64,000 nucleotides of DNA, from assembly GCA_002269645.1 (NCBI GenBank), contig NIVC01001398.1:1-64000 (forward strand), written 5' to 3'. Positions within the stretch are counted from its first letter, which is position 1; each line of letters opens with the position of its first letter. Positions 1 to 61,368 of this stretch are shown one piece after another. Under the pieces are notes generated by a model. The model saw nothing but the letters and a program-made list of their open reading frames with translations. It did no database searches and was not told the origin of the DNA. This DNA comes from Macrostomum lignano (lineage: Eukaryota). The position numbers and the translations under genes were made by a program.

Positions 1-983
1 TGATTTCGGCCCGAATTGATGCCTAAAAAACCAGCGAGTTCACCTGCCGGACGTGGAGAAAGACGTTCAGAAACGCAGGGGGGAGCTCAGCTTAAGGGAA
101 ACTCGGGCAGATAGCAGTTAGGTTGTTACTGTTGAAGTCTATATTGTAGCTGAGGCAGCGGGGTCTTCCATCTCCCTCAACGGTACGGTGGGCTTCTCTT
201 CAACGAACCGAGTCACAGTACTCAAACATCGGTGGTACGCAATGCTATCTTCAATGACTTCAGTCGGCCGTGATTCTCTTTATGTCGAGGTCGTCTCCAG
301 TCTCAATTCCTTTCAGTCGGGTGAAGCTCATACCGGCGTTCGCTTGTGCTGCCAAAATTGAAGTACCTTGCTATGACCGTAGATAGAGTCCTGTGCACGG
401 TTGCCAGTAGTGATTAATTCGCTAAATTAGGACTTTTGAGCAACCCTAACTCACTGCCACTGACCTGGGTGCAATCCGTGATAGGGTTGCTTGGATACTG
501 ATTGGTAAGCAAACAAGCGCGAACTTTATGAATGGGCCAGCAACCTTCCTAAAGTTCCGAGTGCTGTATCCGAGAGCCCAAATGCTGTCATTCAATGGAC
601 AATAATTAGCAATTACTTCCTGTTTCCATATTCTACCCAGCAAGCGGAGTGGATTTGAGGACAAGGGCAGCAGAGGGAAGCCAGAATTAATCACTTAGCC
701 AAGTTTTGGCCAGAAGTGACTCTAAATTCACTCACATGAAACAATTTTTCCTAGTATCCACTCACCAATGCGACACAAACCTGCCTGTCGCCTAACAATT
801 TGGCTTGCGATAAAAGCGTCCCTTCTGAGAGCCTCTGACCACCGGAATCACAACTCAATTTGCTTTCGCCCAGCTTACTCTATAAATCTACACGGGAAAC
901 GCCGAAGCTCAGAAGCAAAGCTGTGGAGACCCTGCAAGCAAAAGTTAATCTTCAGCCGCACCTCCTACTTTCACAGCGTTACC

Positions 984-2738
984 ATGACTACTGATGCAAA
1001 GAGCTCGAGTTCGACCAGCGGAGCGCTGGTGACGCAGGTCCTGCTGGAAGCGGCCAGCGAGACCACAGCCCACGGGCTCAGCAAGCTGGCGGGCCAGAGG
1101 CCGCTCTACATCAAGCTCTGCTGGCTGCTGGCCTTCCTGGCCCTGCTGGGGGTGTTCACGTACAGCATGCACGGATTCACCACCAAGCTGCTCAAAGGCG
1201 AAGTCAGCACATCTTACGAAGCTGAGGCTGTGGACTTTGAGTTTCCTGACGTGTACTTCTGCAACAACGTCCAGATATCTGGCACCTACTCTGTCACGCT
1301 TCCCGGTGCAGTTGTCGCCGACATCAACAGCCGGATGAGCGCCACTTTTGCCGCCTTCGATTTCGCGACGCAGCGGCTGCTCAACTCGTCGCTCTCGAGC
1401 GCCACCGCGTCTCAAATCGATCACATGAAGCTGTTCAGGCTGAAGTCCGCCATCCAGTCGATGCCTTACAATCTGCTCGTGGACAATCTCGCTCACAAGG
1501 AGCAGCAGACGGTGCTGAAGAACGAAAGCAAGTCGGGCATCTCCCTCAAGCCCTTCTACCATCCGAACCACCTGAAGTGTCTCAAAGTCGAAATGACCAA
1601 ACAGAGACGCGCTCAGCTGAGCAAGGTCAATTCGGAGATCAGCTTCCAATTCATCCTCGATCCGTACTTCACCGAATTCAATTATACGCTTAACTATTCT
1701 GCTTATGACCAGGTGCAGAGCGTAACTGTGCCATTGTACAACAACCTAACCGCATACGTGTATGATTGGGACCTTGATACTCCATATGAGATCGACAGAC
1801 CTATGGGAATGAGGCTGTACCTGGCACCGAGGGGAGAATATCCGAGCAGGTTTGTAACAAACTTTCTGCTTGCTCCAGGCAGATCTTACAGCATTGGACT
1901 CACCATGCAGAACATCAAGAAGGATCCGAAAGCATACGATGGACAGTGCCTGACCGAGGCTCCCGAGGTGCAGTTTGTCAATCCGTACAATGCCTCGGCG
2001 TACAATTTCAGCTACAGCAACAGCTTCTGCTACTTCTCAGAGTTTGCCCGGCAGCTGTCTCAGAACGGTTGCAGTCCATATGTGAACCCGCTGCCATGGG
2101 AGTACAGAAATGTGAGATTATGCCTGAACACGAGCGGCCTAAATGAGTCAGAGATCCAGTCGAATCTCATGCATGCCTTCACGGCTGACACGGCTACGCT
2201 GAAAGACTTCCAGCGGCTGTGCCAGAACAGGCAGCTGTGCCTGACCCGGACGTACGAGACCAGCATTTCGAGCGCAAATTGGCCAAATGAGAATGGACAG
2301 GTTCGCCTAATTATGAACACCATGAGGACCGTCTTTGATGTTTCTCCCACTGTCTCCAGACCTGCGTGGGTGGCTTTTTATTTGATTTTAGAATACCATG
2401 TTAAGTCTGGGAACATTCCATTTGCGGAAAGTATGGCATCGAAGGTCTTCTCGCGCTCAGGCCTGAAGGTGACGCTGCGTAGCGAGGAGTCGAGGAGCTC
2501 GCAGATCATTCTGTCGCCCGGCTATTCTCTGCAGACTTACATTGCCGATATGGGCGGCACTGCTGGCATCTACCTCGGCTGCAGCCTGCTTAGCCTGTGC
2601 GAGCTCATCGAGCTGCTTTACAACCTGATTGTCAGAACTCGGAGCCAGAGGAAGTCCAGCAATGTTGTCCATGTGAGGGCCGCGTCCCCGGCTGTCAGCA
2701 CTGTGACTTCGGACAGCCTCAAACTGGCCAAGAAGTAG
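984..2738 (+). CDS. Intronless DEG/ENaC/ASIC-family sodium channel subunit (~584 aa)
   Basis: Pre-TM1 HG motif (TTAHGLSKL), TM1, FPDVYFCNN (FPAVTxCN-like), Cys-containing thumb, SANWP, and TM2 YIADMGGTAGIYLGCSLLSLCE with GxS filter. ATG 984 (accATG) is preferred over ORF start 768 because homology begins there and a pyrimidine tract + CAG (961-976) lies just upstream. Confidence 0.93.
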   Translation: MTTDAKSSSSTSGALVTQVLLEAASETTAHGLSKLAGQRPLYIKLCWLLAFLALLGVFTYSMHGFTTKLLKGEVSTSYEAEAVDFEFPDVYFCNNVQISGTYSVTLPGAVVADINSRMSATFAAFDFATQRLLNSSLSSATASQIDHMKLFRLKSAIQSMPYNLLVDNLAHKEQQTVLKNESKSGISLKPFYHPNHLKCLKVEMTKQRRAQLSKVNSEISFQFILDPYFTEFNYTLNYSAYDQVQSVTVPLYNNLTAYVYDWDLDTPYEIDRPMGMRLYLAPRGEYPSRFVTNFLLAPGRSYSIGLTMQNIKKDPKAYDGQCLTEAPEVQFVNPYNASAYNFSYSNSFCYFSEFARQLSQNGCSPYVNPLPWEYRNVRLCLNTSGLNESEIQSNLMHAFTADTATLKDFQRLCQNRQLCLTRTYETSISSANWPNENGQVRLIMNTMRTVFDVSPTVSRPAWVAFYLILEYHVKSGNIPFAESMASKVFSRSGLKVTLRSEESRSSQIILSPGYSLQTYIADMGGTAGIYLGCSLLSLCELIELLYNLIVRTRSQRKSSNVVHVRAASPAVSTVTSDSLKLAKK

Positions 2739-14988: not shown

Positions 14989-20422
<5,434 letters not shown>

Positions 20423-21304
20423 GGCGGCCGACCCGGACGCGCTGCGGTGGAGACCAGACACGCCTACCCAGTAGCAGAAATCTTTATTAGATGCTTGTTG
20501 CCGCTAAATAACTCGTAATTTCCCTAACGATATCACTATGCTGCTTTATGGCCTCGCTACTCTTTGTCACTGTAATCTCTCTGAAAATTTTAGTCGATTT
20601 ACCTGTAGAAGGATGTGTTTCGGGGAAGGGTTTTTACCATAGACAATCTTGGTCGAGAACGAAATGAAAATTCGTTAAAGAAACATTTAAAAAAAAAAAA
20701 ATTATTTGGTTTTGTTAAAGCGAATCAACTCTGGGATCAACAGAGGTTTTTTCTTCCATATTCGTACTGGCTAGAAATCTTCCATACAATATTTTTTTTT
20801 CCATCGGTTTGAAAACTTCTCTGCTTTCACAGGTCACCAACTGGCTGCTATTAAAGAAATGTTAAATTGCATCACGCGACTCACTCACTGTGTGTGCTTT
20901 GTTTTCCAAGAACCCTGTTATCGAACTTCCGTTTAGAGCAAGTTTAGGCTGTCTTACCTAGACTGCGTATTGGACCGCTTTTCCAGTGTACAATCTGATT
21001 ATAATCTTTTTTTACTTCCATTTTTACTGTCTGCAGCTGGTTTTGCCTGCGCGGCCCCAGTTTACTACAAGACGACGAAATTTTTAGAATCCTTATCTGT
21101 ACTCTTTTCTTAATGTTTTCCTATAGTCTCCACTAGAAGCAGCCGCAAGTACGGGTTGCCTTGCTATTCTGTGTCTCTAAACAAATCTCAAGTGAAAAAT
21201 GAGGCGATCAAAGCGACGAGAGCTTTTTCGTTTTCCTTTTAAATTCCTGCTGGTTTGTCTAACTTTTCTTGTACTTTAACCGCAGATTTTCTGCCGCCCC
21301 TCTT

Positions 21305-21925
21305 AGGGTGAGAAAGAAGGGGAGAGGCTGAGAGACAGGATGAGAAAGAAGGGGAGAGGCTGAGAGAGGGTGAGAAAGAAGGGGAGAGGCTGAGAGACAG
21401 GGTGAGAAAGAAAGGGAGAGATTGAGACAGGGTGAGAAAGAAAGGGAGAGGCTGAGAGATAGGGTGAGAAAGAAGGGGAGAGACTGAGAGACAGGGTGAG
21501 AAAGAAGGGGAGAGGCTGAGAGACAGGACGAGAAAGAAGGGGAGAGACTGAGAGACAGGGTGAGAAAGAAGGGGAGAGTCTGAGAGACAGAGAGTGAGAG
21601 ACAGGGTGAGAAAGAGGGGGAGACAGAGAGACAGGGTGAGAAAGAGGGGGAGACAGAGAGACAGGGTGAGAAAGAAGGGGAGAGACTGAGAGACAGGGTG
21701 AGAAAGAAGGGGAGAGGCTGAGAGACAGGGTGAGAAAGAAGGGGAGAGATTGAGACAGGGTGAGAAAGAAAAGGAGAGAATGAGAGACAGGATGAGAAAG
21801 AAGGGGAAAGACTGAGAAACAGGGTTAGAAAGAAGGGGGCGAATGAGAGACAGGGTGAGAAAAAAAGGAGAGACTGAGAGATAGGGTGAGAAAGAAGGGA
21901 GGACAGTGAGAGGAAGGGTGAGAGA
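21305..21925. repeat. ~33-bp GA-rich minisatellite (GAGACAGGGTGAGAAAGAAGGGGAGAGGCTGA-like)
   Basis: Direct reading. Confidence 0.93.
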
Positions 21926-22260
21926 ATGCGGAGACGATAGGGAACAAACAAAAAAGGGGAAAATAAGAAGGAAGCCCTGAAGCGGCGCTCCCAAAGTATA
22001 GAAAAAAAGATTGGATCGATTTGCACTTCAAATACCAAATACAAAATGGCAGTCAACTTGCGTATTGGGAAGAAAGATTTGTTTTACAAGCCGATTCCAC
22101 CTTCGAGGAATCGGGGCGGTGCGAACAAGTATTTGCTTAGCTGAACTGAGTTCTCGGTCCCATGGCAACTGCCGAGCAAACAGGAATTCCTACTATCTGC
22201 AAGCTGGCTTTTGAAATTTGTTTCTTAATAATTCTCCCGTCTAAGGAGGGATTTGGCGAA

Positions 22261-23084
<824 letters not shown>

Positions 23085-23085
23085 A

Positions 23086-23477
23086 GACTGGGGAACTGGG
23101 GAACTGGGGAACTGGGGAACTGGGGAACTGGGGAACTGGGGAACTGGGGAACTGGGGAACTGGGGAACTGGGAACTGGGGAACTGGGGAACTGGGGAACT
23201 GGGGAACTGGGGAACTGGGGAACTGGGGAACTGGGGAACTGGGGAACTGGGGAACTGGGGAACTGGGGAACTGGGGAACTGGGGAACTGGGGAACTGGGG
23301 AACTGGGGAACTGGGGAACTGGGGAACTGGGGAACTGGGGAACTGGGGAACTGGAGAACTGGGGAACTGGGAACTGGGGAACTGGGGAACTGGGGAACTG
23401 GGGAACTGGGGAACTGGGGAACTGGAGAACTGGGGAACTGGGGAACTGGGGAACTAGGGAGCTGGAGAGCTGGGGAA
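23086..23477. repeat. (GGGGAACT)n 8-bp repeat
   Basis: Direct reading; abuts the GATA array. Confidence 0.98.
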
Positions 23478-23914
23478 CTATATCTTCCCCATTGCATTTC
23501 TCTTATCTTCCCTTTTGTCCGCATCCGAGCCATGGAAACGCTCTAAAGAAGACATCTACTCGAACTAAGAAGCTTTCGGGCCACCGCGCGCCGAACTTGA
23601 GAAGATATGGAGAGTCGGGGGAGCAGCCGCTGAAGTGGGAGATGAGCCCGCCCCGCCTGTGACAGCCGTGCACAGTGCGGTACAGGGCAGGCGGGAAGAT
23701 AAGAGGGAGAAAACATTTCGCAAGAATCCTTTTTGGTCTCCGCTACCCAAGTAGCAGCAGCTGCTTGCATGCAATTCTGCGCTGACATGAATTATTGATG
23801 CGCATCTACTTAGCTCGCCGCGCGATCAGCAGAATGTGCTCGGGAGGCATTCTGCTTCTCACCTCATTCTCTATCTTCGCGACTTTGCTGTTCTCCTCTC
23901 ACTCAATGTGTCTC

Positions 23915-24625
23915 TCCGTGTCTCTCCCTGCGTCTCTCCCTGTGTCTGTCCCTGTGTCTGTCCCTGCGGTGTCACCGTGCATCTCTCCCTGCGTCTCTCC
24001 CTGCGTCTCTCCCTGCGTCTCTCCATGCGTCTCTCCCTGCGTGTCTCCCTGCGTCTCTTCCTGCGTCTCTCCGTGTGTCTGTCCCTGCGTCTCTCCCTGC
24101 GTCTCTCCATGCGTCTCTCCCTGCGTCTCTCCCTGCGTCTCTCCATGCGTCTCTCCCTGCGTGTCTCCCTGCGTCTCTTCCTGCGTCTCTCCGTGTGTCT
24201 GTCCCTGCGTCTCTCCCTGCGTCTCTCCATGCGTCTCTCCCTGCGTGTCTCCCTGTGTGTCTCCGTGCATCTCTTCCTGCGTCTCTCCCTGCGTCTCTCC
24301 CTGCGTCTCTCCCTGCGTCTCTCCCTGCGTCTCTCCCTGCGTCTCTCCATGCGTCTCTTCCTGCGTCTCTTCCTGCGTCTCTCCGTGTGTCTGTCCCTGC
24401 GTCTCTCCCTGCGTCTCTCCATGCGTCTCTCCCTGCGTGTCTCCCTGCGTGTCTCCGTGCATCTCTTCCTGCGTCTCTCCCTGCGTCTCTCCCTGCGTCT
24501 CTTCCTGCGTCTCTCCGTGTGTCTGTCCCTGCGTGTCTCCCTGCGTGTCTCCCTGCGTGTCTCCCTGCGTGTCTCCCTGCGTGTCTCCGTGCATCTCTTC
24601 CTGCCTCTCTTCATGTGTCTTTCCC
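23915..24625. repeat. 12-bp minisatellite (CTGCGTCTCTCC)n with variants
   Basis: Direct reading. Confidence 0.96.
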
Positions 24626-26835
24626 TGCATCGCTGGCTCTAACCAGCCCATTCTCCATTTCCCTGAGTCTCTACTCATATTAGCCCCTGCATGTCTCACC
24701 CAAGCCATTCCCTACTCAGAGTCTTCCCAACTGGATAATTAAGCGCGAGAAAGCTCCCATTGAGTAGTTATTTAAAGAAATATGAGCAAACCTAAGGATC
24801 AGGCGTAGGCATATAGTAAGTATATATTGATCTGAACAATAAGTGCTGTATGGTGCTGGCCCTGGGCCGGCAAAGTGCACCGCGCGCATCAAGCTGGAGC
24901 CGCTCTCAGGGCACACCCGGCCACTTCAATGCCAGGCTTTATTTAACTTTAACTTCAGACCAGCTGGGGGTGGCGGGGAGGGCGGCTTATCGGGGGCCAA
25001 ACGCCTGAGAGACCCCTCGGCATGAAATCCTCGCCCAAGCACCCGTGCAGGTCTGTGTTGACTCTGCACTCATTGCGATTGCGATGGGGCGGCCGCCTGC
25101 TTGTTGGCCCCGCGACTGCCCCCCCCCCCATCTCAGCCTCCCGCAACCATTTCCCACTCTGTTTAACTAGGGGAGCGCGCGCCCAGGTAAGTCCAAATCG
25201 CTCTTCCTAGCTGTGCTCCCATCCCGGTGCCAGGCTCAAGCACTCCTGTCCCACAATGGGCCTACAGAGCTCACACTGGCCAGTCATTCATTGCCAGCTG
25301 CTGCTGGCTCGACTTCATGGCTTCATCGCTTCCGCTGGGCTTCCGTCTCTGACTGCCCCCCCCCGGGCTGGCCAAACACGGCAGGCTGAGAGCTGGGAAA
25401 GAGTTGCCAGGCAATAGGAGTTATTAATCACGCAGGTCGCACCCCACAGAAATCTAGACCGACTCAAATCACCAAAGCCTACATCTGAGATTCTGAGCTC
25501 ATATTGAAAACCGTCTTCGTCTTATAGAAGAATTATGACTCAATTTGTCATCTTTAGCTCACTGCTCTGCATTGAGGCTGCGTCTTCATCTTGCCGGGCG
25601 TCTAATTACTCTAACAATATCCCAGCTCCCGTGTCAGGCGGAGCGCCAGCCCCGTGTGCTGCTCAGTGTGCTATTGCTATTGGCATGCTGGGGCAAACTT
25701 CCCACTGGCGCGTTTCTTCCCTGTCAGCTCAATTCCCCAATCCCCCCCCCAGACAGACGGGCTTGGGGAGCACAGGAAATTGAATACAAAATACCCCCCC
25801 CCCTGTCCCAAATCCCAGGTGAGCCAGCATTTTAATTATCTGCGGATCTGCACTCGGGCCCCCTGCTCTCCCGTGGAACTGCCGATGCATGAGAAATGCT
25901 TAACTGAGTCCATAGTGGCGCTGCCATATCCCCTTCACTTCTCCCTTATTCTCAGACCTGCACTGAGTCGCACTGCTCCCCGTAACACCTTCCCGAATTT
26001 CATACCCTCTCTGCTTCGGCCCAAAAAATATTTGGGTGGAGATTCCTAAAAAACATAAACCCCTAAGCTCGGGCTAATCTCGCCTCGCTATCCACCCCCC
26101 CCCCCCCGAGGATTTGCGCAGTGCAGCCGCGGACTCCGTCAGGGGCGAAGGCTTCATAGAGAACAGCAGAACTGCCCAAACTACAAAACTGCACGCACTG
26201 AAGGCGACGACTCCCACTGCTGAGAGTCGGAGAGATTTGGCTATAGCAAGAAATCAGAAGCCCTTTCTCTCGATCCCCAAACGCCCAATGCCGCCCCCAA
26301 TCCCGCTGATCCGCAATATTGTCCCGCAGCGGGGGTGGGGGTTGGGCGATAGCTTCTTCGCCTTGGAGGGAGAAACTCTTGGACTGGCTGAATCGGGGGA
26401 GTGGGGCGGGGGGCGGTAGGACAAGCTGGCAGTAGCAGCAGCTCCCCCTCCACCCCAAATCCCACAACCTCCACGGCTGCATGGGCGAAGCAGCGGCGGT
26501 CTGTTTGGCCCCCTCGGAGCACGCAGCCCCCCATCCCTCGCGCCCGAGATCGGCTTAGCCAGGCACAGGAGTTGGAAATGAAGTGCAGGGGGGGGGCAGC
26601 CCTGCAGTCCCTCTGCTTGGCTTTTCTTCTCTGTTTCTCTGCAGAGATCCGCTGCCATTGGTTGTCGGACAGCAGCAGGGCCAGGGGCCTCCGCCTCTGC
26701 CCCCCACTCAACTCGTCCGGAATAAAAAGGCCCATTCTCGGCACTGCAGCGGCCCTTCTCAGCCCCAAGGCAGCAGAAATCTTAGGGTGAGACGCAGCAG
26801 TAGAAACAGCGCAGTTTATATCGCCCAGGCAGCCA

Positions 26836-42291
<15,456 letters not shown>

Positions 42292-43884: not shown

Positions 43885-44515
43885 AGACTCTGATTCACTC
43901 GGAAATGACATCCTGATTCATTCGGAGTTGACATCACGATTCACTCGGAGTTGACATCCTGATTCATTCGGAGTTGACATCCTGATTCATTCGGAGTTGA
44001 CATCCTGATTCACTCGGAATTGACATCCTGATTCACTCGGAATTGACATCCTGATTCATTCGGAGTTGACATCCATCCTGATTCACTTGGAGTTGACATC
44101 CCTCCTGATTCACTCGGAATTGACATCCTGATTCATTCGGAGTTGACATCCATCCTGATTCACTTGGAGTTGACATCCCTCCTGATTCACTCGGAAATGA
44201 CATCCATCCTGATTCACTTGGAGTTGACATCCATCCTGATTCATTCGGAATTGACATTCATCCTGATTCATTTGGAGTTGACATCCTGATTCACTCGGAG
44301 TTGACATCCTGATTCATTCGGAATTGACATCCTGATTCACTCGGAGTTGACATCCTGATTCATTCGGAATTGACATCCTGATTCATTCGGAATTGACATC
44401 CTGATTCGCTCGTAGTTGACATCCTGATTCACTCGGAATTGACATCCTGATTCACTCGGAATTGACATCCTGATTCACTCGGAATTGACATCCTGATTCA
44501 TTCGGAATTGACATC
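43885..44515. repeat. 23/27-bp minisatellite (TGACATCCTGATTCAYTCGGART)n
   Basis: Direct reading. Confidence 0.96.
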
Positions 44516-44967
44516 CATCATCCATCGATTTGTCCAAAGTCTTACACATCCTGCAGCTTGCCCATCTGTTCCGCGAAAGAGGGAGCACGGGAGGAGGCTG
44601 AGAACAAGTGCACTGGCAGCTTAGGCCTACAAAACGCATCAGTTTGCCTTTGCTGCAGAGCTTCGAATTTGCTGTCCAAATTACCAGTAATTGCCTATTT
44701 GCATAAGCTTTTAATTGCTGGCGTTCTGGGCGACCACTTCTGCCAGCTTGTGCACACAGAGCCAGTTACGATTGAGCTTGAGCTCCCGTCACTCATGCAA
44801 ACTGGGAACGTATACTCGTACGCAGCCGTTATAGAGAACTTAGAAAAGGTTTATATTTCTACTGATAGTAGATGAAAAGAACATTGCAAGGAAAATTCGC
44901 AACGGTCTTCGAGAAATTTCGCCATTTGCAGCCTTTTAAATAGAAGGATTCGCTGCCGACTCCAGTT

Positions 44968-45096
44968 GGCAGGCTAAGCCAAGCGGTTACTTCGTTAGTG
45001 ATCTATTCGGTAATGATGTTCTGCTTTTAACGGAAACAAGTTGGTTCGATCCCAACCTAACGCCCAAATCAAACTGCTAGCGCAATCCTGCCTTTT
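44968..45096 (+). ncRNA. vtRNA: Vault-RNA-like Pol III gene, copy 1 (129 nt), with embedded tRNA-like domain 44992-45064 (anticodon TTT, Lys)
   Basis: 5' GGCAGGCTAAGCCAAGCGGTTACTTCG matches the recalled vault RNA signature (human vtRNA1-1 GGCTGGCTTTAGCTCAGCGGTTACTTCG). 3' GCTAGCGCAATCCTGCC-TTTT. Terminal helix GGCAGG/CCTGCC, inner helix AGCGGTT/AACTGCT, B box GGTTCGATCC, TTTAAA at about -30. Confidence 0.78.
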
Positions 45097-45419
45097 ACAC
45101 TTTTGACTATTTCTCTTCAGGTTTCTGTTAATCCTAAAAAACTTTTCTGTTTCTTATTGAAGATCCTGAAGAGTTGAACAACTCATCTCAGCACAAAAAA
45201 CTTTATTTGCTGTCTACTTTGGTCCTTGGGGAAAACTGCCACCTAGTTAGCTTATTTAAAAGGCGTTAGCTTATTCTCTTCTCTTCAGTAGCTAAGTCTC
45301 AGTAGCTAAAGTAGAACATCATTACAGTAATAAAATAACCTGCATTAAATGGTGAACCAGCCACTATAAATGGTGAGCCAGCCACTATAAATGGTGAGCG
45401 GCTACAGCACCAGAAGCTG

Positions 45420-45548
45420 GGCAGGCTCAGCCAAGCGGCTACTTCGTTAGTTATCTAATTGGAAAGATGTTCTGCTGTCACCAGAAAGGTTGTTGGTTCG
45501 AGTCCAACCTAACGCTCATTCTTGCTGCTGGCGCCATCCTGCCATTTT
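45420..45548 (+). ncRNA. vtRNA: Vault-RNA-like Pol III gene, copy 2 (129 nt), with embedded tRNA-like domain 45444-45516 (anticodon GTC, Asp)
   Basis: 5' GGCAGGCTCAGCCAAGCGGCTACTTCG; 3' GCTGGCGCCATCCTGCC-ATTTT; inner helix AGCGGC/GCTGCT (compensatory relative to copy 1); B box GGTTCGAGTCC; TATAAA at 45386-45391. Confidence 0.78.
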
Positions 45549-46342
45549 CTTCTTGCGTCCAAGCCAAATTTGCCGATATGTATCGAAAGATAATGTAGGC
45601 TCCATGTTCTACTTCCTTCATAAACTCTGGATAAGAGTCAATTTTGCCGATATGTATCGAAAATAAATAAAATAATTTTCGAATTTTCGTCAAGGCTAAA
45701 TTTGCCTATATGTATCGAAAAATATAGTAAGTCCAGGACAAAGCCTCTTGCATGCTGGATTTTCGGGTTAGGCAATGTAAAGTATAGTAGCTTTAAAGAG
45801 AATTTCTAAATACAAGTATATTGTTCGCATGGCAAATTGTTGTTTACTAAAACTAAACAGAAAAGCAAATACTAAGCTGTACAAGTGTGCAAATTTAATA
45901 ATTCAAAACAATTAAACAACTGGCAAGCAAAATTCGAATGCAGCAGCAAGATTATGGACCCAATTTGGGAATAAATATCGAATGGAGGAATCTCGCAGGA
46001 GACCCTATAAAACACAGATGAGAATGGAAGAATTCAACAAATAGACTGGCAGATTGTTCTCAGCAAGTTTTCAATTTTCTATACCGTTTTTAAGGTAGTA
46101 ACTTTACACGGAAATTTTTATAAACACTATCTATAACAATTAGCATATAGAAAGCTACTCTCAGTAGTAGGAATGGAACACGTATTTACAGGAATAGTTT
46201 ATCGCCAACAAAAAAAACTTTTTAAGCGAGCAAACCGTGTGTTCGGCAACGGTTTTGAGAGGGGACAACTAGAAAATAAAAGCATTGACAAGTCGGACTC
46301 GAGACACACACAAACAGGGGGTCACTAGGCTGCTACCAAGCC

Positions 46343-50100: not shown

Positions 50101-53100
50101 GCTAGGGTTAAGGCTAGAATTAGGGTTGGGGTTAGGGCCAGGATTCAGCTTCAACTCACGGGAGCTATTCCTGTCCTTGGCGGCGCAAGCAGCCGTCTCA
50201 GTTGCCGCGGCCGCCATCTCCGCCGGAGTCAGGCGAGCCCGCAGGCTGGCCCGATCGGTGCAGCGGCCGGTCCCGTCCGCCGAGGTCGACCAGATGCACA
50301 GAGGGTCGGCCAGGCGTCCGCAGGCCGCGCAGCCGCCGTTGCCACCTTCGCAGCGGGTCAGCGGCAAGGCTGAGACGCCGTCGGGACTGACGGCGAGAAT
50401 TCGGCGATGCCTCAGTAGGAGGGACTCGACCGGCTGGCCGGGCGGCAGAACCTGCAGCGTCTCAACGGCCGTAGGCAGAGTTACGTTGGCGCTCGCAGAG
50501 AGGCGAGTCACTTCGCCTGTGTCTGAGGGATGAGACCGATTCTGGAGCTGCTCACTCAGCCGGGAGAAGTGCTGGCTAAATTTCTAGCTTGTTCACATGG
50601 TCTCTGGTTCACTGTCTCTCTCTAGTTCACTGTCTCTCTCTGGTTCACTGTCTCTCCCTGGTTCACTGTCTCTCTCTAGTTCACTGTCTCTCTCTGGTTC
50701 ACTGTCTCTCTCTAGTTCACTGTCTCTCTCTAGTTCACTGTCTCTCCCTGGTTCACTGTCTCTCTCTAGTTCACTGTCTCTCTCTGGTTCACTGTCTCTC
50801 TCTGGTTCACTGTCTCTCTCTGGTTCACTGTCTCTCTCTGGTTCACTGTCTCTCCCTGGTTCACTGTCTCTCTCTAGTTCACTGTCTCTCTCTAGTTCAC
50901 TGTCTCTCTCTAGTTCACTGTCTCTGTCTAGTTCACTGTCTCTCTCTAGTTCACTGTCTCTCTCTAGTTCACTGTCTCTCTCTAGTTCACTGTCTCTCTC
51001 TAGTTCACTGTCTCTTTAGTTCACTGTCTCTCTCTAGTTCACTGTCTCTCTCTAGTTCACTGTCTCTCTCTAGTTCACTGTCTCTATCTAGTTCACTGTC
51101 TCTCTCTAGTTCACTGTCTCTCTCTAGTTCACTGTCTCTCTCTAGTTCACTGTCTCTGTCTAGTTCACTGTCTCTCTCTAGTTCACTGTCTCTCTCTAGT
51201 TCACTGTCTCTCTCTAGTTCACTGTCTCTCTCTCTAGTTCACTGTCTCTCTCTCTAGTTCACTGTCTCTCTCTAGTTCACTGTCTCTCTCTAGTTCACTG
51301 TCTCTTTAGTTCACTGTCTCTCTCTAGTTCACTGTCTCTCTCTAGTTCACTGTCTCTCTCTAGTTCACTGTCTCTCTCTAGTTCACTGTCTCTTTAGTTC
51401 ACTGTCTCTCTCTAGTTCACTGTCTCTCTCTAGTTCACTGTCTCTCTCTAGTTCACTGTCTCTCTCTAGTTCACTGTCTCTCTCTAGTTCACTGTCTCTC
51501 TCTAGTTCACTGTCTCTTTAGTTCACTGTCTCTCTCTAGTTCACTGTCTCTCTCTAGTTCACTCTCTCTCTCTAGTTCACTGTCTCTCTCTAGTTCACTG
51601 TCTCTGTCTAGTTCACTGTCTCTCTCTGGTTCACTGTCTCTCTCTAGTTCACTGTCTCTCTCTAGTTCACTGTCTCTCTCTAGTTCACTGTCTCTCTCTA
51701 GTTCACTGTCTCTTTAGTTCACTGTCTCTCTCTAGTTCACTGTCTCTCTCTAGTTCACTGTCTCTCTCTAGTTCACTGTCTCTCTCTAGTTCACTGTCTC
51801 TCACTAGTTCACTGTCTCTCACTAGTTCACTGTCTCTCTCTAGTTCACTGTCTCTCTCTAGTTCACTGTCTCTCTCTCTAGTTCACTGTCTCTTTAGTTC
51901 ACTGTCTGATTCTAGTTCACTCTATCTCTCCTCTGTCATTTATTATTTTAAATATTAAAAGTTTAAAGTTTAAATCTAAATATTTTCTAGAATTAATTTT
52001 TTCTATAAACTGCAACAGAAATCCAGGGCAGCCCTTGCCCATGGTAGCGCCCCAACAACAACTGGCCTGGGTGACAGGAGTTCAAACATTTTTCTTATTC
52101 TCTGGTAGCTATGGCAGGCAGACAGCCCTGGACAAGTTGCACTGGATAAATATGAATACAGTTATATAAAAAAGATGCGCTCAGCCAAAAACAGAAACCA
52201 TAACACTCATGGCTTCATGAGTGTGGAACTCGTGGCTTCTGCTCGCAGCAATGAGTAGCAAACGCTGGGTCAGCTGCTTTTAATGTTGATGGAGCGGCGC
52301 CTAGAAACAGACGTGCCGCTCCGCCGGTTGAGAGCTCAGCTCAAGTGTAGGTAAGATTCGAGCGCAGGCCAGTGCGCTGAGAAATTCGAAGAGCACTCCT
52401 CCCTGCCGAGATGCTATCGCTGACTCATCGAGGCCAGAGAGAGAGAGAGAAAAATGAGACTGCGAGATCGGCGCAGAGTTTCTGGCCTGGGAGTGAGAGT
52501 AAGGCGGGGCTGGGGCCACCGCGCCTGCGGCTGGGGCCACTACGGCGATAAGGAAAAGATAGGCGGGCCCAGAGTGGCTCCGGTCTCACTGTTGTCTTTC
52601 TAAAGCAAGCAGGCCTTACTGAATTTTTCAACTACAATTATAGTAAACTAAAATGCTCTAAGCTAGGTTTTTTTCTATCGGTTTAGGCAAAAGTGCTGCT
52701 TTGTTAAAAGGCAAGCTGACACAGAGCCAAAGGCGTCGAATATAGTACATTAACAGTTGTTAGCTCGCTGTCAACAGCCTAAAACTGTTCTGCTTTCGAT
52801 AATCCTGAAGCTTCTCTCAGCCAAGAATATATGGCCATCTTTTCAATCATATTTACCTCCGCTCAAGACAGCAGCTCAAAGCCCCATTCACCCCAGCCCC
52901 ATTCACCATGGCTCCATTCACCATGGCTCCATTCACCCCAGCCCCATTCACCATGGCTCCATTCACCATGGCTCCATTCACCCCAGCCCCATTCACCATG
53001 GCTCCATTCACCATGGCTCCATTCACCCCAGCCCCATTCACCATGGCTCCATTCACCCCAGCCCCATTCACCCCAGCCCCATTCACCACAGCCTCATTCA

Positions 53101-56100
53101 CCCCAGCCCCATTCACCCCAGCCCATTCACCCCAGCTCCATTCACCCCAGCCCCATTCACCCCAGCCCCATTCACCCCAGCCCCATTCACCCCAGCCCCA
53201 TTCACCCCAGCCCATTCACCCCAGCCCCATTTACCCCAGCCCCATTCACCCCAGCCCCATTCACCATGGCTCCATTCACCCCAGCCCCATTCACCCCAGC
53301 CCCATTCACCCCAGCCCCATTCACCCCAGCCTCATTCACCCCAGCCCCATTCACCCCAGTCTCATTCACCCCAGCCTCATTCACCCCAGCCCCATTCACC
53401 CCAGCCCCATTCACCCCAGCCTCATTCACCCCAGCCTCATTCACCCCAGCCCCATTCACCCCAGCCCCATTCACCCCAGCCCCATTCACCCCAGCCTCAT
53501 TCACCCCAGCCCCATTCACCCCAGCCCCGCTCACCCCATCCAACGAGCAGCTGGTCGGTCTCCACCCCGAGCTTCTCCGCCTTCGTCAGGAGCGTCAGAG
53601 CGGTCGGCCGCCTGTCGATCGCAGCCTGCGGCGGCAGCACCGTCAGCGCCTCGGCCAGCATCGGCAGAGCCAGCAGGGAGGCCATCCTGGCCACCAGCAG
53701 GTCGCTCAGGCGGTTCCGCTGCGCATCCTCCGGCGTCCAGGAGCAGTTGAACGGCTCCGACACGTCGCTGCGCCGACGGAAGTTCTCCCGCGACAGGCGG
53801 CTGGCCAGCAAAGGCGACTGCCAGCTCCGCCGGCTCAGCTCGATGAAGTCGCCGTCGCCAGTCAGCAGGCGCTCGGCGTCGGCCAGACGGAAGCGGCAGA
53901 CGGCGCGGAAGCCGCCGGTTGGCGAGTTTTGCGGGGCGAACAGGCCGATGAACTGGCCGTCAGAGACCGGCGTTGCCAGCTCTGTAGTTTGGAAGAAGTT
54001 CAAATTTTAATTCGCTTTTGGTCTTGAGAGTGCCAGTTTGAGTTTGCTGAGCGTCATTTTGAGTTCGGTGAGGTGTCATTTTGAGTTCGGTGAGTGTCAA
54101 TTTCAGTTCGATGAGTGTCATTTTGAGTTCGGTGAGTGTCATTTTTAGTTCGGTGAGGTGTCATTTTGAGTTCGGTGAGTGTCATTTTTAGTTCGATGAG
54201 TGTCATTTTGAGTTCGGTGAGTGTCATTTTTAGTTCGGTGAGTGTCATTTTGAGTTCGGTGAGTGTCATTTTAAATTCGGTGAGGTGTCATTTTTAGTTC
54301 GGTGAGGTGTCATTTTAAATTCGGTGAGGTGTCATTTTGAGTTCGGTGAGTGTCATTTTTAGTTCGGTGAGGTGTCATTTTAAATTCGGTGAGGTGTCAT
54401 TTTGAGTTCGGTGAGTGTCATTTTTAGTTCGGTGAGGTGTCATTTTAAATTCGGTGAGGTGTCATTTTGAGTTCGGTGAGTGTCATTTTGAGTTCGGTGA
54501 GGTGTCATTTTGAGTTCGGTGAGTGTCATTTTGAGTTCGGTGAGGTGTCATTTTGAGTTCGGTGAGTGTCATTTTTAGTTCGGTGAGGTGTCATTTTAAA
54601 TTCGGTGAGGTGTCATTTTGAGTTCGGTGAGTGTCATTTTGAGTTCGGTGAGGTGTCATTTTGAGTTCGGTGAGTGTCATTTTTAGTTCGGTGAGTGTCA
54701 TTTTAAATTCGGTGAGGTGTCATTTTGAGTTCGGTGAGTGTCATTTTGAGTTCGGTGAGTGTCATTTTAAATTCGGTGAGGTGTCATTTTGAGTTCGGTG
54801 AGTGTCATTTTGAGTTCGGTGAGGTGTCATTTTGAGTTCGGTGAGTGTCATTTTTAGTTCGGTGAGTGTCATTTTAAATTCGGTGAGGTGTCATTTTGAG
54901 TTCGGTGAGTGTCATTTTAAATTCGGTGAGGTGTCATTTTGAGTTCGGTGAGTGTCATTTTGAGTTCGGTGAGTGTCATTTTGAGTTCGGTGAGTGTCAT
55001 TTTGAGTTCGGTGAGTGTCATTTTGAGTTCGGTGAGGTGTCATTTTGAGTTCGGTGAGGTGTCATTTTGAGTTCGGTGAGGTGTCATTTTGAGTTTGAAA
55101 AGTGCGAATTTTGAGGTTGGTGAGTTGCCACTTGAGTTCGGTGAGTGCCCTTTTGAGTTCGAAAAGTGGCATTTTGAGTTCAATGAGAGCCATTTTGAGT
55201 TCAGTGAGTGCCATGTTGAATCATAAAACTGCTATATTGGGTTGTAAAAACGCCATTTCGCATCTTCAGACAAAGGAGTATTTAGCTTAGAACATGGCGA
55301 CAGCACCGCCTATGCATTTTCCTTAGCAAATAATCTTCTCTATTCAGCAAAAAACTCCCAATTCTGGACCACACTCCAGCGTCCAACATCCTTAATTTCC
55401 TGCCAAAATTCCCTAAAAAAATTCACGCATTCTCCAAGATCTCTTTCAGCAGACAATACTAACTGCCCCCCATACGTCTCTTCCAATTTCCCGAAAAGCC
55501 TTCACTGCAGCAGAAGACAGACAGAGAAAGAGCCCACAGAAATTTCTTGAATGAGCACGACTCTCTCTGTCTGCTTACTCTGTTTGCTTTTTCCGCCTCA
55601 AGGCCATATTGCGAGTGTTGACTAGCGGTCCAACACTCGGGCACTCATGGCCAGGCGACTCCCCGAACTCGGGCCTGCAACACTCGAATCATGTCCAACA
55701 GGAAACACCAAAATGCACTAATAGTATATCGCTTTGTCTGATATCCCCCTTATCGGTAAGAGCACTATTTATCCCAGCAACACGTTGCAGTGCCTTCATT
55801 CAGGCAGTGAGTTGTACTATCGGGCCTAACGGGACTACACGCAAAGAGATTGTGGTAAATAAAAGCTTACTAATAACTCAATTAGAGAGAAATCTACCTG
55901 TTGCACACTTTTTAGCCATGTGTGAGCCCGACTCAGCTCAGATAAGAGCGTAGGCCCGCTCTCTGTTACCCTCTCTGCCGGCTCTCTGTTACCCTCTCTG
56001 CCGGCTCTCTGTTACCCTCTCTGCCCGCTCTCTGTTACCCTCTCCGTCCGCTTTTTGTTACCCTCTCTGCCGGATCTCTGTTACCCTCTCTGCCCGCTCT

Positions 56101-59758: not shown

Positions 59759-60266
59759 GGAGAGAGAGAGGCAGCATTTCGGCCCGTGGCGCAACTCGCC
59801 ATTGCACTACGCGAGATTCCGATGCAATTACTGGGAAATTTCGCATTCGGGTCTCCTCATTTTGTAGTGCAAACAAAGGCTTAGTTTGTAGCAAAATCGC
59901 ATCTGCGAATATTGCCGTAAATGCTGGTCGACTGCTTTAGCCCCGAAATCCGGACTTCTTCTGCTGCCTTCAGTTCTGATTCTGAATATGGCATTGAAAT
60001 TTGCTGCAAGACATTTGCAGCGGCTTCAGCTTTAGTTGCGCATTATGCCCGATGACAGATTTAATCAGTGTCAGTTGCGTAACTCTATTGCGCACATGCA
60101 ATCTCTTTATTAGCGGCTGGCCTGTTGACTGCGATGCGTGGAAAGATTGACAACATGCACTGGGGTGGGCTGAAGGGCGTGAGAATGGCGAAGTTGAGTT
60201 AGGAAGACATGGCACTGAGCAATGAGAAAGAGTCTTAAATGGCCTAGAACACAGACACAGACAGAA

Positions 60267-60339
<73 letters not shown>

Positions 60340-60340
60340 T

Positions 60341-60397
<57 letters not shown>

Positions 60398-60509
60398 AAG
60401 ACAGAAAGACAGACAGGCAGACAGACAGACAGACAGACAGACATACAGACAGACAGGCAGACAGACAGACAGACATACAGACAGACAGACAGACAGACAG
60501 ACGACAGAA

Positions 60510-60580
<71 letters not shown>

Positions 60581-60659
60581 AAGACAGAAAGACAGACAGG
60601 CAGACAGACAGACATACAGACAGACATACAGACAGACAGGCAGACAGACAGACAGACAT

Positions 60660-60698
<39 letters not shown>

Positions 60699-60729
60699 CA
60701 TATACAGACAGACAGAAAGACAGACAGGC

Positions 60730-60766
<37 letters not shown>

Positions 60767-61368
60767 GGCAGCCCACCTGGACCAGTCCGGACCGCTCGGT
60801 ATTGACAGTTTCCACATAGTTGCTGGTCTCGGCCGCTGGCTCGGTGTACACGGCGTACATCCTGTCTCTGACCTCGTGCATAACGTGGGCGCGGGCGCCG
60901 CGCGCCATCCACAGAGCGCGGCTGCGGCGCGAGTACAGATCGGCTGTGGTGAAGCCGATGTCGGCAAACTCGGGCCCGGTCAGCTCCACCAGGTCGGTGG
61001 CCTCGCGAATCGGCGGCAAGGCGGCGAAGAAGACCCACGAATTGCCGCGGCTCAATCGAAGCGACACCGGCGGCGGCTGCGACTTCTTTGACGGCGCTGG
61101 CGGCAGGAGGAGCGCGCTGATCTGCCGGTTCACCGGAGCAGCCGCGGAGTGTCGCCAGACTCTGCCGGCGCTGGCGCTGCCTCGGTCGAACCGGCGGCAG
61201 ACCCGGCTGTCACCGTCGCCGACAATCGCGCAGACGAAGGCGGCGCCGCTGCCGGAGTGGCCGGGGAAGAAGAGGCTGCGCACCAGGCCGCCGCTGCCAC
61301 CGGTTGGCCAGGCCGCCACCTTGGCGAAGTCCGAGATGTTGCTCGTCCGAAGCTCGTACACAGCGTCC
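46343..61368 (-). CDS. Divergent transmembrane semaphorin (Sema + PSI + TM + cytoplasmic tail), 5'-incomplete; exons 61368-60777, 58052-57908, 53981-53535, 50522-50160, 47196-46343
   Basis: [19 protein letters not shown]...[11 protein letters not shown]...YDVLE, FIGLF...AVCRF, LLVGWDTGEV, PSI domain [10 protein letters not shown]...GRC, and [28 protein letters not shown]. All four internal introns are GT-AG with compatible phases (0,1,1,1). Upstream exon(s) not found. Confidence 0.88.
47330..47775. repeat. 31-bp minisatellite (GAGATTAGACTGTCACTCTCTCAGATCCCCA)n
   Basis: Direct reading. Confidence 0.96.
48360..48815. repeat. CT-rich minisatellite, ~30-bp units grading to 26-bp (CATCTCCAGTGCTCTC core)
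   Basis: Direct reading. Confidence 0.9.
49817..50136 (+). repeat. Degenerate telomere-like hexamer array (TTAGGG/CTAGGG/CTAGAG)
   Basis: Direct reading; interstitial, in a semaphorin intron. Confidence 0.9.
50605..51915. repeat. 18-bp minisatellite (GTTCACTGTCTCTCTCTA)n
   Basis: Direct reading. Confidence 0.98.
52880..53530. repeat. 15-bp minisatellite (CCCCATTCACCCCAG / CTCCATTCACCATGG)n
   Basis: Direct reading; abuts the donor at 53534. Confidence 0.97.
54050..55095. repeat. 20/21-bp minisatellite (GTGTCATTTTGAGTTCGGTGA[G])n
   Basis: Direct reading. Confidence 0.97.
55957..56325. repeat. 23-bp minisatellite (GCTCTCTGTTACCCTCTCTGCCG)n
   Basis: Direct reading. Confidence 0.95.
57162..57730. 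repeat. 45-bp minisatellite containing the reverse complement of the 23-bp unit core
   Basis: CAGAGAGGGTAACAGAGAGC is the reverse complement of GCTCTCTGTTACCCTCTCTG. Confidence 0.95.
58460..58825. repeat. 22-bp minisatellite (GCAGAGGGCGGAAGGGTTGCAA) with alternating variants
   Basis: Direct reading. Confidence 0.95.
59671..59770. repeat. (GA)n microsatellite
   Basis: Direct reading. Confidence 0.97.
60255..60770. repeat. (GACA)n microsatellite
   Basis: Direct reading; abuts the donor at 60776. Confidence 0.98.

Follow-up and report, generated by a model that had tools for sequence, protein, structure and literature searches.

Two tandem RNA polymerase III (Pol III) units in the genome of the macrostomid flatworm Macrostomum lignano, here called copy 1 and copy 2, are best read from their sequence as bona fide vault RNA (vtRNA) paralogues whose central domain mimics a tRNA. 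The units lie head-to-tail on the + strand of contig NIVC01001398.1 (assembly GCA_002269645.1), 452 nt apart and each ~128 nt long, and the window analysed here comprises positions 1 to 64,000 of that contig. The function of vault RNAs and the binding partners of their variable central domain have been open for decades, and a complete tRNA shape that is selectively maintained in the centre of a vault RNA would give a concrete handle on what these RNAs bind. What is new here is the vault RNA with a tRNA-mimic core; the vault identity itself was already in the databases, because M. lignano vtRNAs are listed in Rfam and were previously the only ones known within flatworms (Fontenla et al. 2022, PMC8824774).

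Detection as vault RNA and as tRNA

The whole window was searched with Rfam at the curated gathering thresholds (34 bits for RF00006, 29 bits for RF00005), and four matches were obtained, all within copies 1 and 2. The Vault family RF00006 was matched over the full model (positions 1-99) at 44967-45097 (47.2 bits, E=2.1e-07) and at 45419-45548 (55.2 bits, E=1.2e-09), and one match to the tRNA family RF00005 was nested inside each of these (Table 1). ARAGORN called exactly two tRNAs in the 64 kb, a tRNA-Lys(ttt) at 44992-45065 and a tRNA-Asp(gtc) at 45444-45517. A preliminary description of this DNA had proposed vault-like RNAs with a complete tRNA cloverleaf as their centre; the nested matches above the family cut-offs and the two ARAGORN calls bore this out, and the coordinates, stems and loop sequences that it gave for both copies were recovered when re-read from the sequence. 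When a covariance model built from copies 1 and 2 (R1) was searched over the window with filters off, the two copies scored 153.5 and 153 bits, respectively, and the next match reached 12.7 bits.

The units share with known vault RNAs (RF00006) a Pol III gene with box A, box B and T-run, a panhandle of the 5' and 3' ends, a length of 80-150 nt, an arrangement as tandem paralogues and near-consensus motifs at the 5' end (GGCNGGCU.AGCNNAGCGGYUACUUCG) and the 3' end (CNGCNGGCGC..UCCNGCC). Each unit opens with the vault 5' motif GGCAGGCU.AGCCAAGCGGYUACUUCG, in which box A lies; there follow, in order, a 73-nt cloverleaf, a joiner of 8-9 nt, the vault 3' motif CUGCURGCGC.AUCCUGCC and TTTT, and the unit measures ~127 nt up to the T-run. 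Pairing of the ends into the vault panhandle was predicted for both copies. By sequence match, the Pol III layout comprises the box A region AGCCAAGCGGYTAC, box B GGTTCGANNCC, the TTTT and equally spaced TATA boxes, and the TATA spacing places the start of transcription at the vault 5' end, so that the predicted primary transcript of ~127 nt would begin at the vault arm rather than at the tRNA-like part. The similarity between the copies runs from the GGCAGGC start to the T-run, and no alignment was found in the flanks outside the units apart from the TATA-like box, the sole aligned block upstream. Unlike the short variable linker of known vault RNAs, the centre of copies 1 and 2 is the 73-nt cloverleaf, and its acceptor and T arms stand in place of the inner helix of the Rfam model (UUCGA paired with UCGAG of box B) or compete with it. 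In both copies the T arm GTTGG-TTCGANN-CCAAC doubles as the vault box B, and acceptor positions 1-3 are the final three bases of the vault UUCG motif.

The nucleotides of the cloverleaf for the L-shape are all present (U8, A14, G18, G19, A21, G26/A44, U33, A37, U54-U55-C56-G57-A58 and G53-C61), and in copy 2 each of the 20 stem pairs in the model is standard. In both copies pair 1:72 is mismatched (U/C), which leaves the acceptor stem short of a full 7 bp. When the 48 nt between TACTTCG and GGTTCGA were shuffled, with the arms, box B and the 3' acceptor strand left intact, no tRNA was called by ARAGORN in 1000 shuffles of either copy, and a chance cloverleaf caused by box B was rejected on this basis. 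ARAGORN likewise made no tRNA call for four human vtRNAs or for the five vtRNAs of Fasciola hepatica given in Table S9 of PMC8824774 that were examined. In the Rfam Vault consensus the centre is unstructured, and ~32 inserted nt are needed to fit copies 1 and 2 to the 99-position model. Given the shuffles, the negative Fasciola and human results and the unstructured consensus centre, the cloverleaf was considered to be real and not a generic property of vault RNAs.

Substitution pattern, predicted folding and anticodon loops

The comparison of the two copies points to an ancient duplication, because the flanks are unalignable, the 3' joiner is largely different and 14 of the 17 loop positions that are variable in tRNAs have changed. 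Over the whole unit, 5/70 paired columns differ against 23/62 unpaired columns (Fisher p=3e-5), and within the cloverleaf the corresponding counts are 2/40 and 14/34 (Fisher p=1.8e-4). The unpaired positions of the cloverleaf were divided into a universal class (positions 1, 8, 14, 18, 19, 21, 26, 32, 33, 37, 44, 54-58 and 72), in which 0/17 differ, and a variable class (positions 9, 15-17, 20, 20a, 34-36, 38, 45-48, 59, 60 and 73), in which 14/17 differ, namely 9, 15, 17, 20, 34, 36, 38, 45-48, 59, 60 and 73 (Fisher p=1e-6). The stems had been described as staying paired between the copies, and this held: neither of the two stem changes costs a standard pair. In the anticodon stem U.G stands against U-A, and in the D stem the U/U mismatch of copy 1 stands against a U-A pair of copy 2. 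Copy 1 has U:A and copy 2 has A:U as the tertiary 15:48 pair. In the panhandle a compensatory change was found at columns 21/108, where the U-A pair of copy 1 corresponds to C45439-G45524 in copy 2.

A two-sequence covariation test, in which 254/500 shuffles reached the observed value, has no statistical power at n=2, and the placement of the substitutions was used for the selection argument in place of covariation statistics. On this pattern, both the panhandle and the cloverleaf are judged to be under purifying selection, the latter because the universal positions are identical, the stem changes are confined to 2/40 and no pair is lost. Frozen stems interleaved with saturated loops are hard to explain by neutral decay or gene conversion. 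The support for the cloverleaf is a pattern of conservation and not covariation, since there is no compensatory change inside it.

In the predicted folding of copy 2, the minimum-free-energy structure is exactly a panhandle enclosing a four-arm cloverleaf, with helix probabilities of 0.4-0.65 for the cloverleaf arms and mostly ~1.0 for the panhandle. The outer helix of the panhandle and its GCGGU/ACUGC segment reach predicted pair probabilities of 0.96-1.0 in both copies, and three panhandle pairs in 44978-44981 of copy 1 are weak (0.01-0.28). For copy 1 the panhandle, the anticodon arm and the T arm were recovered by the prediction.

In all seven bases, CTTTTAA and CTGTCAC agree with the anticodon loops of E. 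coli lysT and aspU, in line with their earlier assignment to tRNA-Lys(UUU) and tRNA-Asp(GUC), and with those of human tRNA-Lys-UUU and tRNA-Asp-GUC. The loops of the two copies differ at positions 34, 36 and 38 and have U35 in common. The preliminary description had taken them for interchangeable anticodon modules, and this part of it did not stand: there are two copies only, and positions 34, 36 and 38 diverge at the rate of other unconstrained positions, as judged from the 14/17 variable against 0/17 universal positions that differ. Together with position 35 they are the only loop positions left free by the tRNA-shaped scaffold, and 82% of the free positions elsewhere in the molecule differ. 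The differing 'anticodons' thus look more like the outcome of drift than like swappable modules. A single substitution separates GUU from UUU and likewise from GUC, and the two triplets would most simply be explained by neutral divergence of loop positions that are unconstrained, perhaps with GUU as the ancestor. As a lead only, the nearest body among the human tRNAs compared is that of tRNA-Asn(GTT), which agrees with copy 2 at 33/40 over positions 26-65 (runner-up 28/40); a text search for this human sequence gave 0 matches.

It is doubtful that the loops were instead selected to copy Lys-UUU and Asp-GUC, as decoys or sensors aimed at synthetases, anticodon-loop modification enzymes or anticodon nucleases. 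Both loops match the cognate E. coli loops in all 7 nt, base 38 included, and U35 was kept while 34, 36 and 38 changed. The class IIb synthetase trio Lys/Asp/Asn reads U35, and its anticodons are UUU, GUC and GUU, the last being the intermediate one step from either of the others; CUGUCAC moreover conforms to two enzyme motifs, the CUNNCAC loop of the Dnmt2 type and U33-G34-U35 of tRNA-guanine transglycosylase (TGT). This is a post hoc curiosity with a chance probability of a few percent. Against such selection, the case is built on two copies, 34, 36 and 38 are near-saturated like all other unconstrained positions (14/17), any triplet within a C32-U33-NNN-A37 frame reads as some anticodon, and the acceptor-end identity elements (G73) are absent. 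Two 'cognate' loops would be met by chance in a few percent to ~10% of cases, on a post hoc estimate, and the agreement of base 38 with the cognate loops, noted post hoc, carries little weight as evidence, A and C being the two commonest bases there. A still wider proposal, that macrostomid and perhaps other lophotrochozoan vault RNAs are full tRNA mimics with individually selected loops that, through the retained U35 and the UUU/GUC (and inferred GUU) triplets, are aimed at class IIb synthetases or at anticodon-loop enzymes (Dnmt2, TGT, Elongator), is likewise a long shot; if true, vault RNA would act as a decoy, sensor or chaperone that connects the vault particle with tRNA metabolism, and the architecture may keep an ancestral state of vault RNAs that arose from a tRNA gene.

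Proposed function and alternative readings

The reading preferred here, with a probability of roughly 0.55, is that copies 1 and 2 would act as full-length vault RNAs in which the tRNA-shaped centre serves as a handle for tRNA-recognising proteins. The 5' and 3' arms would bind the vault partner, and the tRNA-shaped domain would recruit La, RNase P/Z, the CCA enzyme, elbow and T-loop modification enzymes, anticodon-loop enzymes and exportin-t. The vault RNA would thereby be handled like a tRNA, as in the case of the tRNA-like domain of YrlA Y RNAs, and would take no part in decoding. YrlA, a bacterial Y RNA, is the best functional analogy: according to Chen et al. 2014 (PMC4201824), it is an RNA of a large ribonucleoprotein whose terminal helix binds the particle protein and whose second domain mimics tRNA, carries tRNA modifications and serves as a substrate of tRNA enzymes. 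YrlA differs from the present units in being bacterial and associated with Ro60, in lacking sequence homology to them and in mimicking tRNA without a normal anticodon arm, whereas copies 1 and 2 have the full four-arm cloverleaf with a canonical 7-nt anticodon loop. On the handle reading the tRNA processing, modification and export machinery would be predicted as partners, which is testable in M. lignano, a flatworm kept in the laboratory; the units would form a eukaryotic parallel to the tRNA-mimicking bacterial Y RNAs, and the relatedness of vault RNA and tRNA genes, an idea derived from their common box A/B promoter, would be given a physical form.

Several points weigh against this reading. 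There are only two sequences and no ortholog, no compensatory change lies inside the cloverleaf, and DNA-level promoter constraint could partly account for the conservation of the stems, at least near the T arm. In copy 1 the full cloverleaf lies 9.2 kcal/mol above the minimum-free-energy fold: the D stem has 3 bp and a U/U mismatch, the acceptor and D stems have ~zero predicted probability, and the 5' acceptor strand pairs instead with the 3' D region. Thermodynamic prediction often misses the fold of real, unmodified tRNAs, and the modelled fold of copy 1 should nevertheless be regarded as a genuine caveat. Finally, the joiners on both sides of the cloverleaf (4 nt 5', 8-9 nt 3') mean that the full-length form may not be a stable species.

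The last point leads to the main alternative, a tentative one, in which the 127-nt transcripts are mainly precursors, as for mascRNA and the TMERs (tRNA-miRNA-encoded RNAs) of murine gammaherpesvirus 68 (MHV68): RNase P/Z would excise the 73-nt cloverleaf, CCA would be added, and the product would be exported as a stable tRNA-like RNA. The arms would provide the promoter (box A) and, paired as leader and trailer, would present the substrate, or they would last as a short duplex. The cloverleaf looks like a competent RNase P/Z substrate because of the single-stranded joiners, with positions 1 and 73 flanked by unpaired UACU on the 5' side and by 8-9 nt on the 3' side; the acceptor and T stack has 12 layers, and the elbow nucleotides read by RNase P/Z are all present. 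A leader-trailer interaction aids RNase P processing of the MALAT1 tRNA-like element (PMC8457004), and RNase P is able to cleave the YrlA of M. smegmatis, which can also acquire CCA (PMC4201824). A U1/C72 mismatch at the cleavage site does not favour excision, and the arms are conserved at the RNA level, as judged from the compensatory pair, and match the vault consensus far beyond box A, which is unexpected for a disposable leader and trailer. The full-length handle and the precursor are not exclusive, and the sequence conservation of the arms argues that they matter too.

That the units are genuine decoding tRNA-Lys and tRNA-Asp genes with a long pairing leader and trailer, the Vault matches being false positives, is very improbable, although both copies pass RF00005 and ARAGORN and their anticodon loops are cognate. 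A single AU-rich body carries the two 'isotypes': the acceptor and T stems do not differ between them, and the D and anticodon stems are nearly the same; pair 1:72 is U/C, and base 73 is C or U, so that neither the discriminator nor the body is appropriate to the isotype. The tRNA scores exceed the family cut-off by just 13.6 and 20 bits, and the D stem of copy 1 is short. The arms match Vault at E=1e-9 and 2e-7 and include AGCNNAGCGGYUACUUCG and GCGC..UCCNGCC, motifs that no tRNA leader needs, and the TATA spacing sets the start at the vault 5' end. Ordinary tRNA genes were rejected on the shared body, the 1:72 mismatch, base 73 and the Vault-matching arms, in line with the earlier view that working translational tRNAs were unlikely. 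Equally hard to credit is that the units are inert, as decaying chimeric pseudogenes or copies of a tRNA-derived short interspersed nuclear element (SINE) without RNA-level function. Pol III repeats derived from tRNAs abound in animal genomes, the window is very rich in repeats, and a 25-nt inverted fragment of a unit lies at 45308-45332. Only two units are present in the 64 kb, however, with the next covariance-model match at 12.7 bits; the flanks are unaligned and have no A-rich or simple-repeat tail and no SINE body, and the substitutions fall preferentially outside the stems and universal positions (p=1e-6 to 3e-5), a pattern not expected of neutral decay. A SINE was rejected within the window, since the copies are only two and adjacent, their flanks are unrelated, the similarity stops at the T-run and no body or tail was found.

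Other known systems resemble the units in part. The tRNA-like RNAs mascRNA and menRNA of MALAT1 and NEAT1 (PMC8457004, PMC11693755) likewise place a tRNA-like fold within a longer non-coding RNA, with recognition by RNase P/Z and a leader-trailer interaction, but they are 3'-end processing signals of RNA polymerase II long non-coding RNAs; their anticodon arm is degenerate, and they lack both vault arms and a role as an internal Pol III promoter. With cytosolic tRNA-Lys(UUU) and tRNA-Asp(GUC) the copies share identical loops (E. coli) and all universal tertiary nucleotides; unlike these tRNAs, they put both anticodons on one AU-rich body inside a conserved longer transcript. A fused layout, in which a tRNA-like module is joined to another RNA module, is found in tRNA-derived Pol III RNAs or SINEs such as rodent BC1. 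It is also that of the MHV68 TMERs (PMC4337559), in which a non-aminoacylated tRNA-like module provides the box A/B promoter for Pol III. In TMERs and BC1 the tRNA-like part is 5' and the partner downstream, whereas in copies 1 and 2 the cloverleaf is nested in a closing panhandle, a separate vault box A lies upstream, and the units are not dispersed in the 64 kb.

Feature coordinates, family search and genomic surroundings

Table 1. Coordinates of the features of the two vault-type units (window positions).
Feature	Position	Strand	Basis or remark
Copy 1, whole vault-type Pol III unit	44967..45096	+	T4 terminator 45093-45096 included; RF00006, R1 scores
Copy 1 TATA-like box TTTAAATA	44935..44942	+	~33 to 26 nt upstream of GGCAGGC start; read from sequence
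Copy 1 5' panhandle arm, vault box A and conserved motif GGCAGGCTAAGCCAAGCGGTTACT	44968..44991	+	Vault consensus alignment; last 4 nt are the unpaired joiner
Copy 1 tRNA-shaped central domain	44992..45064	+	ARAGORN tRNA-Lys(ttt); RF00005 42.6 bits
Copy 1 anticodon loop CTTTTAA	45024-45030	+	anticodon TTT at 45026-45028
Copy 1 T arm	45040-45056	+	box B GGTTCGATCCC at 45043-45053
Copy 1 3' panhandle arm AACTGCTAGCGCAATCCTGCC	45072..45092	+	Rfam alignment, fold prediction
Copy 2, whole vault-type Pol III unit	45419..45548	+	T4 terminator 45545-45548 included; RF00006, R1 scores
Copy 2 TATA box TATAAAT	45386..45392	+	~33 nt upstream of GGCAGGC start, spacing as in copy 1
Copy 2 5' panhandle arm with box A GGCAGGCTCAGCCAAGCGGCTACT	45420..45443	+	Rfam alignment, fold prediction
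Copy 2 tRNA-shaped central domain	45444..45516	+	ARAGORN tRNA-Asp(gtc); RF00005 49.0 bits
Copy 2 anticodon loop CTGTCAC	45475-45481	+	anticodon GTC at 45477-45479
Copy 2 T arm	45492-45508	+	box B GGTTCGAGTCC at 45495-45505
Copy 2 3' panhandle arm GCTGCTGGCGCCATCCTGCC	45524..45543	+	Rfam alignment, fold prediction

Several repeats lie close to the units. A 21-nt tandem repeat, TAAATGGTGAGCCAGCCACTA, at 45346-45408 carries a TATAAAT box in each repeat unit; copy 2 is preceded by three phased TATA boxes because the last unit of this repeat supplies its promoter TATA. Between the two genes, the inverted 25-nt fragment (- strand) corresponds to copy 1 from the D-loop to the start of the anticodon loop. 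Its core is complementary to 45010-45027 at 17/18 positions. The fragment carries the copy-1-type CTTT loop start and aligns locally with a score of 33, whereas 500 shuffles reached 23 at most; it could have been left by an inverted partial duplication, or it could be a complementary site for a small RNA derived from copy 1. Directly 3' of the copy 2 terminator, a ~45-nt repeat with the core AAATTTGCCGATATGTATCGAAA occurs three times in 45553-45729, spaced by 74 and 58 nt, and a tandem repeat of 23 nt, CCTGATTCACTCGGAATTGACAT, with ~5-6 units occupies 44400-44539, ~430 nt upstream of copy 1.

The search for further family members covered metagenome, prokaryotic and viral sequences. The metagenome contigs were scanned with the pattern AGCGGYTACTTCG-N(42-66)-GGTTCRANNCC, which gave 25 loci, all of them bacterial coding sequence or tRNA genes with a chance leader and none a vault RNA; the general pattern gave one phage tRNA-Thr with a chance leader, and no vault RNA, in the viral contigs, and the family-specific pattern gave 0 matches in the prokaryotic genome collection. 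No vault or tRNA match was found at two loci encoding homologues of inositol polyphosphate 1-phosphatase (INPP1) with 39-40% identity (L026 and L027). Because no further family member was retrieved, statements on the behaviour of the family as a whole are predictions. Four of the metagenome and viral loci (L011 3400-3486, L015 2913-2998, L021 5830-5915 and L028 335-420) are tRNA genes of bacterial or phage type with a common leader, in which the hairpin gcacctcccggtgcg is followed by AGCGGTTACTTCGGATAC; in L028 the gene is a tRNA-Thr(ggt) in an array with tRNA-Tyr and tRNA-Glu. This leader appears to have matched the vault pattern by chance and looks like a conserved spacer of tRNA arrays.

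No paper on a tRNA cloverleaf or tRNA mimicry in any vault RNA was found in the searchable literature, the coverage of which did not extend to Stadler et al. 2009 and Mosig et al. 2009, and the earlier statement that no such description was known agrees with this. In Fasciola hepatica the vtRNAs are enriched in extracellular vesicles, and the frequent tRNA fragments include 5' halves of tRNA-Lys(TTT) and tRNA-Asp(GTC) (PMC8824774). That these fragments share both anticodons with copies 1 and 2 is probably a coincidence, although reads from tRNA-like vtRNAs could be mis-assigned to tRNA-Lys(TTT) and tRNA-Asp(GTC). For annotation, such loci would be called twice, as a tRNA gene and as a vault RNA, and would inflate the counts of tRNA-Lys and tRNA-Asp.

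The terminal exon of INPP1 lies at 41800-42291 (+), 2.7 kb upstream of the units, and its product shows 80% identity to an M. lignano protein and 40% to the next matches. Further upstream, an apparently intronless open reading frame (ORF) of 656 aa for an amiloride-sensitive sodium channel (ASC/DEG-ENaC) lies at 768-2738 (+), and exons of an axonemal microtubule stabiliser of the SAXO1/2 type at 15899-17471 (+). The MVP gene is not within the window. Very long microsatellite arrays with tetranucleotide or other short periods occupy 19400-24700, 28100-30500, 35200-38400, 50600-54000 and 60100-61000; they yield spurious ORFs of hundreds of codons in several frames on both strands and show strong local GC and AT skews.

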